The position numbers were made by a program, and so were the translations under genes. DNA of 64,000 nucleotides, from NCBI GenBank assembly GCA_937625935.1, contig OW569379.1:310001-374000 (forward strand), written 5' to 3'. The notes beneath the pieces are model-generated. The model was not told the origin of the DNA, did no database searches, and was given only the letters and a program-made list of their open reading frames with translations. Shown piece after piece: positions 16,307 through 62,816 of the stretch (position 1 is the stretch's first letter; each line of letters starts with the position of its first letter). The stretch comes from Tetramitus jugosus. Lineage: Eukaryota; Protista; Heterolobosea.

Positions 16307-16398
16307 GAATTAAAAAAATCATTCATTCATCTGTGTTTTTTGGATCAAGATCTTGACATCCCATCAAATGTGTGTAATAGGGAAAACTCGTCAAAACG

Positions 16399-16471
16399 TA
16401 CGCCATATGGGAGTCGAACCCATGACCCCTGGATCCGAAGTCCAGTGCTCTATCCACTGAGCTAAAGGCGC
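16399..16471 (-). tRNA. tRNA-Arg (anticodon UCG)
   Basis: GCGCCTTTAGCTCAGTGGATAGAGCACTGGACTTCGGATCCAGGGGTCATGGGTTCGACTCCCATATGGCGTA: cloverleaf, A and B boxes, TTTT terminator just downstream. Acceptor stem has G1-U72 and a U-U mismatch. Confidence 0.93.
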
Positions 16472-16515: not shown

Positions 16516-16768
16516 TTTCGTATTCCAAATGGCAAGATGGAAAAGCGTCCTTTGCGATGGGCGCGTCGAGGGTATGATGGACATAGAAACAAATACCATC
16601 GAAGATGTCACCAACGGACTGATGGTAGCGATTGGGATCAAAACAGCAGAAGCCGGTAAGAAAGCAAGAAACTATGTGAATGGGGTGAAACGGAGATGTC
16701 TCACGACGAAGAGCGATGGCTGATGAAAATGTATTGATGATAAAGCGAGCAACCCCAATGGTTGTATG
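16516..16768 (+). mobile_element. Decayed 3' fragment (copy D) of putative tRNA-targeting retroelement
   Basis: Peptide GIKTAEAGKKARNYVNGVK is homologous to copy C at 60663-60719. Ends in ATAAAG..GCAAC..GTTGTATG like copy A. 5' boundary is approximate. Confidence 0.65.
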
Positions 16769-58807: not shown

Positions 58808-60598
58808 ATGAGAGTCAGTCACTTGCTATCAAACACTCGATCGAGCAAGCATTTTACTGCTCGCACAGCATTCAACAACCTCTCCCATCACCACCAACAA
58901 AAGAATAACTTTTACACTGCTCCAACCTGTTTCTCATCACATCATGATAGCAGCAGTAGTAACATTACTGATCATCCGTTGTCTGACGTGATTATTGGTG
59001 TATACAGCAACGGAGAGTTAACTCCCACAGGTAAACTCTTCCTGTCCAATGACTTCCAAAAGTCCGCTATCCTCAAAAAGAGCAAATGGGAAGCAGGAAA
59101 AGTCCGACTCATTTACAATGATCCAAATAGTAGTCATTTGAGTCGAGATCACGAGAAGAATGTGCCATCGATTCGTCGAATTGCACTCGTGTGCGTTGGT
59201 GAAAATGACAAGGCAACAACAACAACAACAACAAGTGCTCCTTCAAAACATGCCAACTCCATTTTTGTTCAACAATTCTCACCTAGTGAAGAAACGACAA
59301 GTGTCAATGCACTAAAGACTGCAAGTGTGAGATCGAGTGTGTCCGCTGCCATGAGTGCACTGATCAAGGATGATGAAGATGCGACATCAAGAGTGTTTGT
59401 CGATGATTTTGACTCGAATCGATCACAAGTGGCTCAAGCACTTCAACATTCGATTTTCAAGTTTGATGTTTTGAAGAATATAAAGGAACGAGAACAAAAG
59501 AGCAAAAAGGACAAGGATTATCACTTTGAGTTGTTGTCCAAAAAGTCTGATTGTCATTCACAACAACAACAAGAGACAAAAGAAGAAGGATTCAGTGCAT
59601 TTGTTCGAGGTACAGTGTACGGAGAGAGTCAAAATATGGCACGTTTCCTGGGTGAGATGCCAGCCAATTTCATGACACCTACCATCTTTTGCAACACTGT
59701 GAGTGAACGTGTCAAATCACTGGATCACCAAAATTCCATATCCATTGAGATTCATGATCGATCTTGGGCACAAAACAAGCAAATGGGATCGTTTTTGTCT
59801 GTGGCAAAAGGTTCTGCACAGGAGCCAAAGGTGCTAGAGATGACATATATCGGTAATCCATCCAACAGCGATCAAATTGATCTGTGTTTAGTTGGAAAGG
59901 GTATTACGTTCGACAGTGGTGGCATTTCGTTGAAGCCAGGAGCTGGAATGAAGGATATGAGAGGTGATATGGGCGGTGCAGCCACTACTTGCTCTGCATT
60001 TTATGGCATTGCAAAGCTCAAATTGCCATTGAACGTGAAGGTCATTTGTATGATGTGTGAGAACATGCCAGGACCAGATGCTGTAAAGCCTGGAGATGTC
60101 ATTCAGGCAATGAACAAGGTCACAATCGAAGTAGACAACACAGATGCCGAAGGTCGATTGATTTTGGCAGATGGATTGTGTTATGCATCGGAAATTAAAC
60201 CAAAGATGATTGTAGATGTGGCTACTCTGACAGGAGCGATCGTCGTTGCATTGGGAAATGCATGTACCGGAGCGTACACGACATCAAATGAATCATGGAA
60301 GCAGATCGAGAAGGCAGGTTTGGTCACGAATGACTACATGTGGCGAATGCCCCTGTTTATTGACACATTTAAGAAGCAGCTCAAGTCATCAACAGCTGAT
60401 TTGAATAATATTGGAGGAAAGGAAGCTGGAAGCTGTACTGCTGCAACTTTCTTGTCTTCGTTTGTTGATTTTGACAAGGTCAAGCACTGGGCTCACTTGG
60501 ATATCGCTGGTTCATTTATGGAGAAGGATGGAATGACTGGAAGACCGACTAGAGCACTAATTCAATTGGCTAGTCAACTTGCTTCTCAACAAGTTTAA
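58808..60598 (+). CDS. M17 leucyl aminopeptidase, probably mitochondrion-targeted
   Basis: VGKGITFDSGGISLK, MRGDMGGA, NTDAEGRL, DVATLTGA, WAHLDIAG; basic N-terminal presequence. Confidence 0.95.
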   Translation: MRVSHLLSNTRSSKHFTARTAFNNLSHHHQQKNNFYTAPTCFSSHHDSSSSNITDHPLSDVIIGVYSNGELTPTGKLFLSNDFQKSAILKKSKWEAGKVRLIYNDPNSSHLSRDHEKNVPSIRRIALVCVGENDKATTTTTTSAPSKHANSIFVQQFSPSEETTSVNALKTASVRSSVSAAMSALIKDDEDATSRVFVDDFDSNRSQVAQALQHSIFKFDVLKNIKEREQKSKKDKDYHFELLSKKSDCHSQQQQETKEEGFSAFVRGTVYGESQNMARFLGEMPANFMTPTIFCNTVSERVKSLDHQNSISIEIHDRSWAQNKQMGSFLSVAKGSAQEPKVLEMTYIGNPSNSDQIDLCLVGKGITFDSGGISLKPGAGMKDMRGDMGGAATTCSAFYGIAKLKLPLNVKVICMMCENMPGPDAVKPGDVIQAMNKVTIEVDNTDAEGRLILADGLCYASEIKPKMIVDVATLTGAIVVALGNACTGAYTTSNESWKQIEKAGLVTNDYMWRMPLFIDTFKKQLKSSTADLNNIGGKEAGSCTAATFLSSFVDFDKVKHWAHLDIAGSFMEKDGMTGRPTRALIQLASQLASQQV

Positions 60599-60604
60599 TA
60601 AATG

Positions 60605-60781
60605 AGGGCTGTCGATCATTTTGCGCTGGTGAGCGAAATTGTGGGGTGTTGACACACTTGCATTTCACCCAGTTAACGAACGTGCGAGCCTTTCGGTACG
60701 CCCGTTCTTGTTTCTGTCCATTCTTACTATGAGCGTCTGCAAGCACTAATCGCTTCACCTGCACTTATTTTCCTTCCCTGC
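60605..60781 (-). mobile_element. Decayed fragment (copy C) of putative tRNA-targeting retroelement
   Basis: GQKQERAYRKARTFVNWVK is 10/19 identical, ungapped, to copy D. Starts with GGGAAGGAA, shared with copy E. Boundaries are approximate. Confidence 0.6.
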
Positions 60782-60860
60782 TTTTTTTTATACAACCAGT
60801 GGTTGCACTGTTTTTTCTTTGTCTCTTCTCTTTTCACAGCATTCCAAGTTTGATTTCATT
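60782..60860 (-). mobile_element. Short 3'-end fragment (copy B) with terminal hairpin and A8 tail
   Basis: Minus strand ends GTGCAACCACTGGTTGTAT-AAAAAAAA, the same terminal motif as copy A. No clear TSD. Confidence 0.5.
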
Positions 60861-60998
60861 CCGCCTAGCGGCTAGTTTTTTTTTTTTTTTTTCCATACAA
60901 CATTTGTTGCCACTTTATTCTATGCACTACAGTGAGACGTGTTGTCGCTCAGAACCGCAGGTTCTGAGCTATTGTTCACCTCACCGCCTAGCGGCTAG
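60861..60998 (-). mobile_element. 5'-truncated retroposed insertion (copy A, 108 nt) with 15-bp target-site duplication
   Basis: CCGCCTAGCGGCTAG at 60861-60875 and 60984-60998. T17 at 60876-60892 abuts the left repeat; TTTATT (AATAAA on minus) at 60914-60919. Confidence 0.85.
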
Positions 60999-61027
60999 AC
61001 CCGTGTGGAAAAACAAATCAATAACTA

Positions 61028-61098
61028 GCATCTGTAGTGTAGGGGTATCATGCAGCGTTGCCATCGCTGCGACCCGGGTTCGAATCCCGGCAGATGCA
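61028..61098 (+). tRNA. tRNA-Gly (anticodon GCC)
   Basis: GCATCTG/CAGATGC acceptor stem, GCAGCG-TTGCCAT-CGCTGC anticodon arm, GGTTCGAATCC T-arm, TTTT terminator. Confidence 0.95.
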
Positions 61099-61183
61099 TT
61101 TTACCTTCGGACGCTCTTTTAAGGTTGCGTGACATGTTGTCTATTGGGGCAGCAAAAAAGATCTCACACAATTTATCACCATT

Positions 61184-62816
61184 ATGCGTACGACAAGATG
61201 TCTATTGGCAGTTGCAACTGCAATCCTTTTGATTGGCTGTTTTAGTTCACTGTGTCAAGCTGTTCAACTTGCTTCAAAGCTCCAAGTCAAGAATCCACTC
61301 AAAGGCTTCATGAACTATCGACTCGATGATGGATCGAGCAACTTGTTTCCCACCACCATGGAATACTCTTATTTTTCAATGAAGGAATTAACTCCGTCCT
61401 CTGGTGTCTACAACTTTACCAACATTCAAAAGTTTAAGCAAGAGGCTAATGCAAGAGGCAATCACATTGTGTTTCGAGTGTACTTGGACTATCCAGATTG
61501 TTGCCCAGATGGTGTTTATAGCACAGGTGTTCCTAGCTATTTGACCACTGGAACCAGTCCAGTGACTTTTACGAGTTACACGGATTATGGGGGTGGTCAG
61601 TGTCCAGACTATACCAATGTAAGACTGTTGAATGAAGTGAAGGGAATGATCAAGGAGCTGGGAAAGGAGTTTGATGGAGATAGTGGTGTAGCTGCAATTA
61701 TGGCCGGTTTTCTTGGATTCTGGGGAGAGTGGCACACGTATCGTATGTGATTGATTCTATCTGTCTGATTCTTCATTTTTGTGCATTTGTGCTTGTGGAG
61801 ATCTGATCTCTCTCTAACAATGTGATTTTGAACTTGTTGTTTGTTATTGGTGGTGTTTTGTAGCTCATGATGAGCTTTTCCCTAGTCTTATAATTCAAAA
61901 TGACATCTTCAAGTCATTTTCCAATGCATTCAACACCACACCAGTGGTTGTGAGTGCTGATTCACTGCAATATTTTTCAACTGCATCAGAGAGTTACCTG
62001 CAAAATAATGATATTGGATGGCATGATGATAATTTCTGTTCAGCAACATACAAGGAGAATTCAAATGTGGATTGGTACTTTTACAATCGATTGGTTGACC
62101 GTAGCTTGAACAACAATTGGAAGAAAGTTGTTATCGGAGGAGAGGTTCAACCGGACATTCAAAACCAATTGTTTGACTCCTCAAAAACGTGCGCTGATTG
62201 TCAACCTTTTATTCCTGCAGTTCAAGCCACTCATGCCTCCTGGTTGCTCTTCTATAATATTTTCCAATCAGGATTAGCCTCTAAACCAAGCGTAGTAGCC
62301 GCTGCCAAAGGAGGAGCGGCAGTCATGGGATATGGCATCCACGTTCCTGAGGTACAGTTGGGCAATTGCACCACTGGAGGTAATTGTACAGCCGTTTCAG
62401 TATCAGTTAGAAATATTGGTGTTGCTCCATTCTATTATCCTCTACAACTGAAAGCAAAGATTAACTCTGGTTCTTGGGTCACACTCACATCAAGTCTCGG
62501 TTCTCTCCTCCCATCAACAACCAACACTGTCTTCCAAAGTGAGATTCAATTCACTCCACTCGTGAGCTCAAACAACACTTTAACCTTGTCTCTGAATAGT
62601 CCACATGTCCTTTCCAACCAACAACTTCTGTTCTCCAATGAACAATTGAATAGCGAAGGACATATCGAACTCTCCTTTGCAATGGATAGCGAAGGACCCC
62701 ACACACCACAAACCTCCCAAAGCAATCCATCAAGTGAGCCATCAGCTGCCACTTCCTTTGGGTCAAAGTCGTTGCTATTGGGTCTCTTAGTCTTCGTCGC
62801 GGTGCTCCTGGTATAA
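61184..62816 (+). CDS. Secreted, probably GPI-anchored DUF4832-type glycoside-hydrolase-like protein; intron 61743-61863
   Basis: Signal peptide; NPLKGF, RVYLDYP, GFLGFWGEWHTY|PHDE, GWHDD, IGGEVQP, MGY, NIGVAPFYY; hydrophobic C-terminus after a Ser/Pro linker. Confidence 0.75.

Follow-up and report, generated by a model that had tools for sequence, protein, structure and literature searches.

A 107-nt insert upstream of a tRNA-Gly gene in Tetramitus jugosus, at positions 60876-60982 of the window (the whole 64-kb stretch of DNA that was analysed), is best read as a recent, heavily 5'-truncated copy of a LINE that integrated by target-primed reverse transcription (TPRT), at a site picked by its position and orientation relative to a Pol III gene. 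We put the probability of this reading at roughly 93%. The 44-nt spacing between insert and gene is the targeting rule of the family; the original prediction gave this distance but did not draw that inference from it. At the level of the locus itself, the copy is an ordinary, harmless young family member, and it could serve as a presence/absence marker to distinguish strains.

The insertion scar upstream of tRNA-Gly

The insert is flanked by a perfect 15-bp direct repeat, CCGCCTAGCGGCTAG, at 60861-60875 and 60984-60998 (Table 1). These are its only two occurrences in the 64-kb window, and it did not occur in 100 shuffles of the window, with up to one mismatch permitted; a chance repeat was considered and rejected. 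The stretch from repeat to repeat is 108 nt long and opens on the forward strand with T17, which is A17 on the reverse strand. A spacer of 21 nt (60893-60913) separates this A-tract from an AATAAA on the reverse strand. The tRNA-Gly(GCC) gene was called concordantly by ARAGORN and Rfam, and the gap between the insert and its +1 is exactly 44 nt (60984-61027), with 29 nt between the proximal repeat and +1. The original prediction had every one of these figures right, from the repeat, the T17/A17 run and AATAAA to the 21-nt spacer and the two distances. Its 108-nt insert stands as the length between the repeats but not as element sequence throughout: homology stops at position 107/108, only 60876-60982 belongs to the element, and the A at 60983 is an extra junction base. 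Similarly, a TAG does lie ahead of AATAAA where it had been placed, but it is not the stop codon of ORF2, which is found at 60969-60971. A contig from an independent assembly, made from a run of the same organism, is identical to the window across 60965-61046 with zero differences; the 5' junction, the proximal repeat and the beginning of the tRNA gene are thereby confirmed.

Table 1. Features of the insertion and its target in the window, in order of position.
Feature	Position	Strand	Remarks
Distal (left) TSD copy, 15 bp	60861-60875		Empty-site position -44 to -30 relative to tRNA +1
Element A17 tail (T17 on +)	60876-60892	-	Start point of target-primed reverse transcription
LINE 3' UTR, complete, 76 nt	60893-60968	-	Contains terminal motif GTTGTATGG, AATAAA (60914-60919) and 10-bp hairpin (60947-60969)
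Conserved stem-loop of the 3' UTR	60947-60969	-	10 bp, loop of 3
ORF2 stop TAG (60969-60971) and final 11 coding nt (...GEQ*)	60969-60982	-	5' truncation point at 60982
Single extra A at the 5' junction	60983		Absent from the element and from the empty-site flank
Proximal (right) TSD copy, 15 bp	60984-60998		Direct repeat
Spacer between TSD and tRNA +1, 29 nt	60999-61027	+	Presumed seat of Pol III initiation factors
Target gene, tRNA-Gly(GCC)	61028-61098	+	62.9 bits; head-to-head with the element; followed by TTTT

The element and its families

All 107 nt of the insert are identical to the 3' end of a full-length, 4,951-nt non-LTR retrotransposon on contig C16 (C16:359,546-364,494), in which both reading frames are intact. 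The genome assembly (26.35 Mb, 56 contigs) holds at least 41 matches of the 108-nt insert; over positions 1-107, one copy is 100% identical and two are 99% identical. The remaining copies extend past position 107, which makes the window copy a 5'-truncated member. A SINE was ruled out as well, given that the 5' end of the insert is a truncation point past which other copies continue. Across the family, inserts range from 108 to 982 nt and then jump to the full length of 4,951 nt; TSDs are 13-17 bp long, poly(A) tails run from about A6 to A19, 5' truncation is variable and LTRs are absent. The marks of LINE integration recognised originally (TSD, poly(A) and 5' truncation) are real, and the longer, near-identical copies that had been predicted do exist.

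The copies sort into families A, C, D and X. Identity among these is only about 66% across the body, rising to 85-88% within the final 108 nt, and their 5' ends resemble one another as well. Families A, C and D each have one full-length copy with both ORFs intact, and the other full-length copies are broken. All families terminate in GTTGTATGG followed by poly(A), and all carry a 10-bp hairpin directly past the stop codon, with compensatory changes between families at two pairs (A-U to C-G and A-U to G-C). The hairpin pairs were counted by script, as a MAFFT alignment of the 3' ends misaligned the hairpins in families C and D. The fold of the 90-nt 3' end beats 200 of 200 shuffles (z = -3.24), and this conserved end, judged from sequence, fits recognition by the reverse transcriptase. 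Reading frames resembling ORF1 have at least 91 matches in the genome, many adjoining tRNA genes. Other LINE families are stacked beside this one in the flanks of three 5'-end loci (L035, L047 and L039); their 3' termini are of the AATACAAC or CCACATAAC type, each with a hairpin of its own, and a terminal GTTGTAT-like motif is seemingly common beyond the family group.

The full-length element is an autonomous, APE-type non-LTR (LINE) retrotransposon with a poly(A) tail. Its 5' end reads oligo(A)-CGCGAACAC and then directly the ATG of ORF1, for a 5' UTR of about 15 nt. ORF1 (336 aa) and ORF2 (1277 aa) overlap by 4 nt and are followed by a 76-nt 3' UTR and the tail. With so short a 5' UTR, full-length copies might need the target site for their own transcription, if the broader reading given below (a Pol III ruler evolved independently of TRE) is true. 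ORF2 contains a LINE-type reverse transcriptase, with an above-cut-off match to RVT_1 (E 3e-25); in the PDB this domain matches R2 reverse transcriptases (E 3e-21), and L1 ORF2p was absent from the matches at E <=0.01 in this single-sequence search. The search for relatives of the reverse transcriptase returned 79 proteins, the best match being 25-34% identical and none being named as Dictyostelium. There is a weak zf-RVT match at the C-terminus of ORF2, and no RNase H domain was found in the element. At the N-terminus, a single-sequence Pfam search gave a weak match to AP endonuclease (E 2e-3), and the region by itself had no significant match in the PDB; a profile built from it and its distant relatives found L1 endonucleases at E 1e-27 to 3e-28. 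The catalytic residues N11, E40, Y111, D144, N146, D200 and H227 are all conserved. ORF1p matched no Pfam family, and the ESM Atlas gave only leads under 0.9. Its structural model has a pLDDT of about 90 over residues 7-230, and the best structural matches are tandem-RRM proteins; ORF1p is predicted to consist of two RRMs and a long helix or coiled coil, followed by a disordered tail. Prediction of a complex between ORF1p and the TBP core of the host yielded a score of 0.00, which counts neither for nor against binding.

Distance, orientation and choice of target

To locate TSDs at 30 loci, the sequence left of the T-run was matched to sequence further right, without use of a family model. Nine truncated copies had a TSD as well as a tRNA; in all nine, a proximal TSD of 15-17 bp begins 43-45 nt before tRNA +1. 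Their targets are tRNA Gly-GCC, Gly-TCC, Leu, Ala, Pro, Phe, Val and Arg and one intron-bearing tRNA. In four full-length copies the TSD starts at 44, 43, 44 and 42 nt before +1. Taken over every copy with a TSD and an ARAGORN-called tRNA, the start falls 42-45 nt before +1 (13/13; 44 in the window copy), and the 5' end of the element faces the 5' end of the gene (13/13). Where the target is a 5S rRNA gene (three cases), the TSD runs from -38/-39 to -24/-25. For 5S RNA the first base coincides with the transcription start, whereas in tRNA genes a short leader usually comes before the mature sequence. Given a pre-tRNA leader of a few nt, the tRNA and 5S offsets probably amount to about one and the same distance when counted from the Pol III start. 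Nine reconstructed empty sites, compared in and around the TSD, share no common sequence, which indicates that the element measures position and not a DNA word. At least 47 5S rRNA genes are present genome-wide, scattered singly on many contigs and not arrayed, and LINE copies lie just upstream of several.

An element-independent check was made on 42 tRNA genes chosen by Rfam score. Repeated sequence with its proximal end between -37 and -65 was found at 19/42, a lower bound, since 18 of the tRNA genes were matchless against a small library. Only 3 of the 42 hold a member of the group formed by families A, C, D and X, so several families have the tRNA-upstream habit. The rule also extends to an environmental contig (ENA ERZ23579034) that encodes an ORF1p 55% identical to ours, where the same 5' end lies 40-43 nt head-to-head from a tRNA-Lys(UUU) fragment; its best match in the T. 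jugosus genome is only 88%, so the contig does not come from that genome. The second tRNA gene of the window, Arg(TCG) at 16398-16471 on the reverse strand, has repeated DNA at -219 to -60 relative to +1 (about 16531-16690). This repeat has matches at other loci of the genome and none among families A, C, D and X; it is probably an older insertion of another family. With repeats upstream of each, both tRNA genes of the window are occupied.

One case does not fit a rule of "always a known Pol III gene", and it is unexplained. The intact C16 copy sits 44 nt ahead of a sequence of roughly 100 nt (C16:364,539-364,637) that starts with the A-box-like GGGGGTTAGCTCA, contains the B-box-like GCGAATTCAACC and ends in T5. 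This sequence had no match in Rfam at permissive thresholds or in ARAGORN, and its fold is no better than shuffles. A second copy, 96% identical and 9.5 kb away (C16:355,024-355,108), likewise lies about 44 nt downstream of an element 5' end. The sequence is possibly a Pol III gene, either decayed or not yet annotated, to which the element is still drawn.

Insertion at the window site would proceed as follows. The endonuclease would cut the tRNA-sense strand some 29/30 nt before tRNA-Gly +1; the T-run comes after the distal TSD copy, which places the presumed first nick on this strand at about -30/-29. The freed 3' end would then prime on the poly(A) tail, and reverse transcription would halt after 107 nt. 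A nick in the second strand 15 nt further upstream, at -44/-45, would produce the 15-bp duplication. The ribonucleoprotein of the element would most likely be tethered to the Pol III initiation complex (TFIIIB/TFIIIC), as in TRE5-A. The fixed distance, the single orientation, the lack of a target motif and the offset between tRNA and 5S genes all point to such tethering.

Could the endonuclease instead read a DNA motif upstream of tRNA genes, in the manner of R1, R2 or Tx1 and with no protein tethering? Some LINE clades are sequence-specific and the APE domain here is intact, but no motif is found in or around the TSD of the nine reconstructed empty sites, the targets comprise many tRNA species and 5S genes with unrelated upstream DNA, and the shift of 5-6 nt between tRNA and 5S offsets is what measurement from the transcription start, as opposed to the reading of a DNA word, would predict. 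We consider motif reading very unlikely. Less likely still, by our estimate, is that insertion is random and that in a gene-dense genome selection spares only copies in harmless spots, such as those upstream of tRNA genes. The genome is compact with short intergenic regions, and selection against genic insertions must exist; such a process, however, cannot yield a spread of 42-45 nt with a single orientation in 13 of 13 copies, and the rule is already followed by very young copies, whose TSDs are perfect and whose identity is 100%.

The slightest chance of all goes to the view that the 108 nt are not a truncated LINE but a SINE-like non-autonomous element or an assembly artefact (a collapsed repeat). 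The insert is short and adjoins a tRNA gene, and the T-run junction lies outside the coverage of the independent contigs. Against this, the insert matches the final 107 nt of the LINE colinearly and base for base, the end of ORF2 included; the range of insert lengths, from 108 to 982 nt and then full length, is what 5' truncation predicts; an internal Pol III promoter is absent; and an independent contig crosses the 5' junction without a difference. A truncated LINE copy placed relative to a Pol III gene is the reading that we retain.

Age, host and comparison with known systems

The window insertion looks young, as the original prediction had it: it has 0 differences from an intact full-length copy, a perfect TSD and a pure A17, and no older insertion lies behind it at the site. 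The further suggestion that the family may still be active is plausible, given an intact full-length copy in each of three related families, but the empty allele that was sought in its support did not turn up. Contigs of four runs were compared with 60500-61400 for an allele with a single repeat, and no empty-site joint was found. Scans of metagenomes with exact patterns (the left flank plus TSD, and the 3' end of the family) returned nothing; near-identical records may be screened out of that collection. Two groundwater metagenomes carry a close relative, in contigs that end at the two repeats. Over window positions 60500-60733 and 61078-61400 these contigs show a few differences per 200 nt, and they diverge from the window right of 60733, so the intergenic insertion region may differ between strains.

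The genes of the window are eukaryotic and intron-poor, in a compact genome with short intergenic regions. The best named relatives of its CDC20 are all Heterolobosea (Willaertia magna, 59%; Naegleria fowleri, 59%; N. lovaniensis, 57%; Acrasis kona, 54%), and environmental relatives reach 72-82%. An exact look-up of the aminopeptidase that flanks the insertion returned no record. Contigs C54 and C56 of the assembly carry tRNA genes at identical coordinates (941, 12773, 14364, 14438 and 44585) and probably represent either a single organelle genome present twice or one contig that was duplicated.

We lean, with distinctly less assurance than for the window copy itself, towards a broader reading: a heterolobosean LINE group evolved a Pol III ruler independently of TRE, nicks at about -24 and -38/-39 from the transcription start, takes as its targets not only tRNA and 5S genes but also one or more unannotated Pol III-like genes, and is still active. 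If the ruler reading is true, insertions of the family could be used to map Pol III promoters in Discoba. In the open-access literature on retrotransposons and tRNA genes of Heterolobosea and Naegleria, no such element was found described. [quoted passage not shown]

Among better-known elements, mammalian LINE-1 is alike in its AP-type endonuclease (matches at E about 1e-27), poly(A), TSDs of about 15 bp, 5' truncation and an RNA-binding ORF1p with a coiled coil. It differs in that it does not target Pol III genes. The order of domains in ORF1p differs too, with two RRMs predicted before the coiled coil in T. jugosus and a coiled coil followed by RRM and CTD in L1, and the reverse transcriptase of the T. 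jugosus element has R2, but not L1 ORF2p, among its single-sequence PDB matches at E <=0.01. Ty3 of Saccharomyces cerevisiae targets TFIIIB and takes a fixed position upstream of tRNA genes (PMC5911963). Ty3, however, is an LTR element that carries an integrase; its insertions fall on the transcription start site, and target-primed reverse transcription plays no part in them. In Polysphondylium (Heterostelium) pallidum, the non-TRE element NLTR-B inserts 39-64 bp upstream of tRNA genes, so the habit arose more than once (PMC5006619). NLTR-B has three ORFs and an RNase H domain after the reverse transcriptase, a domain that the T. jugosus element appears to lack.

The closest counterpart is TRE5-A (DRE) of Dictyostelium discoideum. 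TRE5 elements insert 40-54 bp ahead of tRNA genes, or 37-41 bp ahead of 5S genes, with their 5' end facing the tRNA, and their ORF1 protein binds TFIIIB (PMC5911963, PMC3159450). In TRE5-A, ORF1p binds TBP, Brf1 and Bdp1, and a working B box is required for targeting (PMC5911963). TRE5-A and the T. jugosus element are alike in ORF1 and ORF2 (APE, reverse transcriptase and zinc finger), in an oligo(A) tail, in their distances from tRNA and 5S genes, in 5'-to-5' orientation, in frequent 5' truncation and in stacking at one target. Three functional traits of TRE5 recur, namely the tRNA distance, the orientation (in ERZ23579034 also) and 5S sites a few bp closer. The hosts, however, are an amoebozoan in one case and a heterolobosean (Discoba) in the other, and the spread of distances is much tighter in T. 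jugosus (42-45 nt). The UTR modules of TRE (A, B and C) are absent from the T. jugosus element, which has a 5' UTR of about 15 nt and a 3' UTR of 76 nt with one hairpin. We have not filed the element as a TRE because its UTRs are without modules and the relatives of its reverse transcriptase are distant (25-34%), with none named Dictyostelium. The absence of Dictyostelium-named proteins among the 79 relatives hints at independence from TRE, and is no proof of it. The same geometry in a distant supergroup would be clear convergence under the pressure of a compact genome, and would provide, beside TRE5-A, a second, independent system for asking how a LINE ribonucleoprotein reads TFIIIB/TFIIIC.
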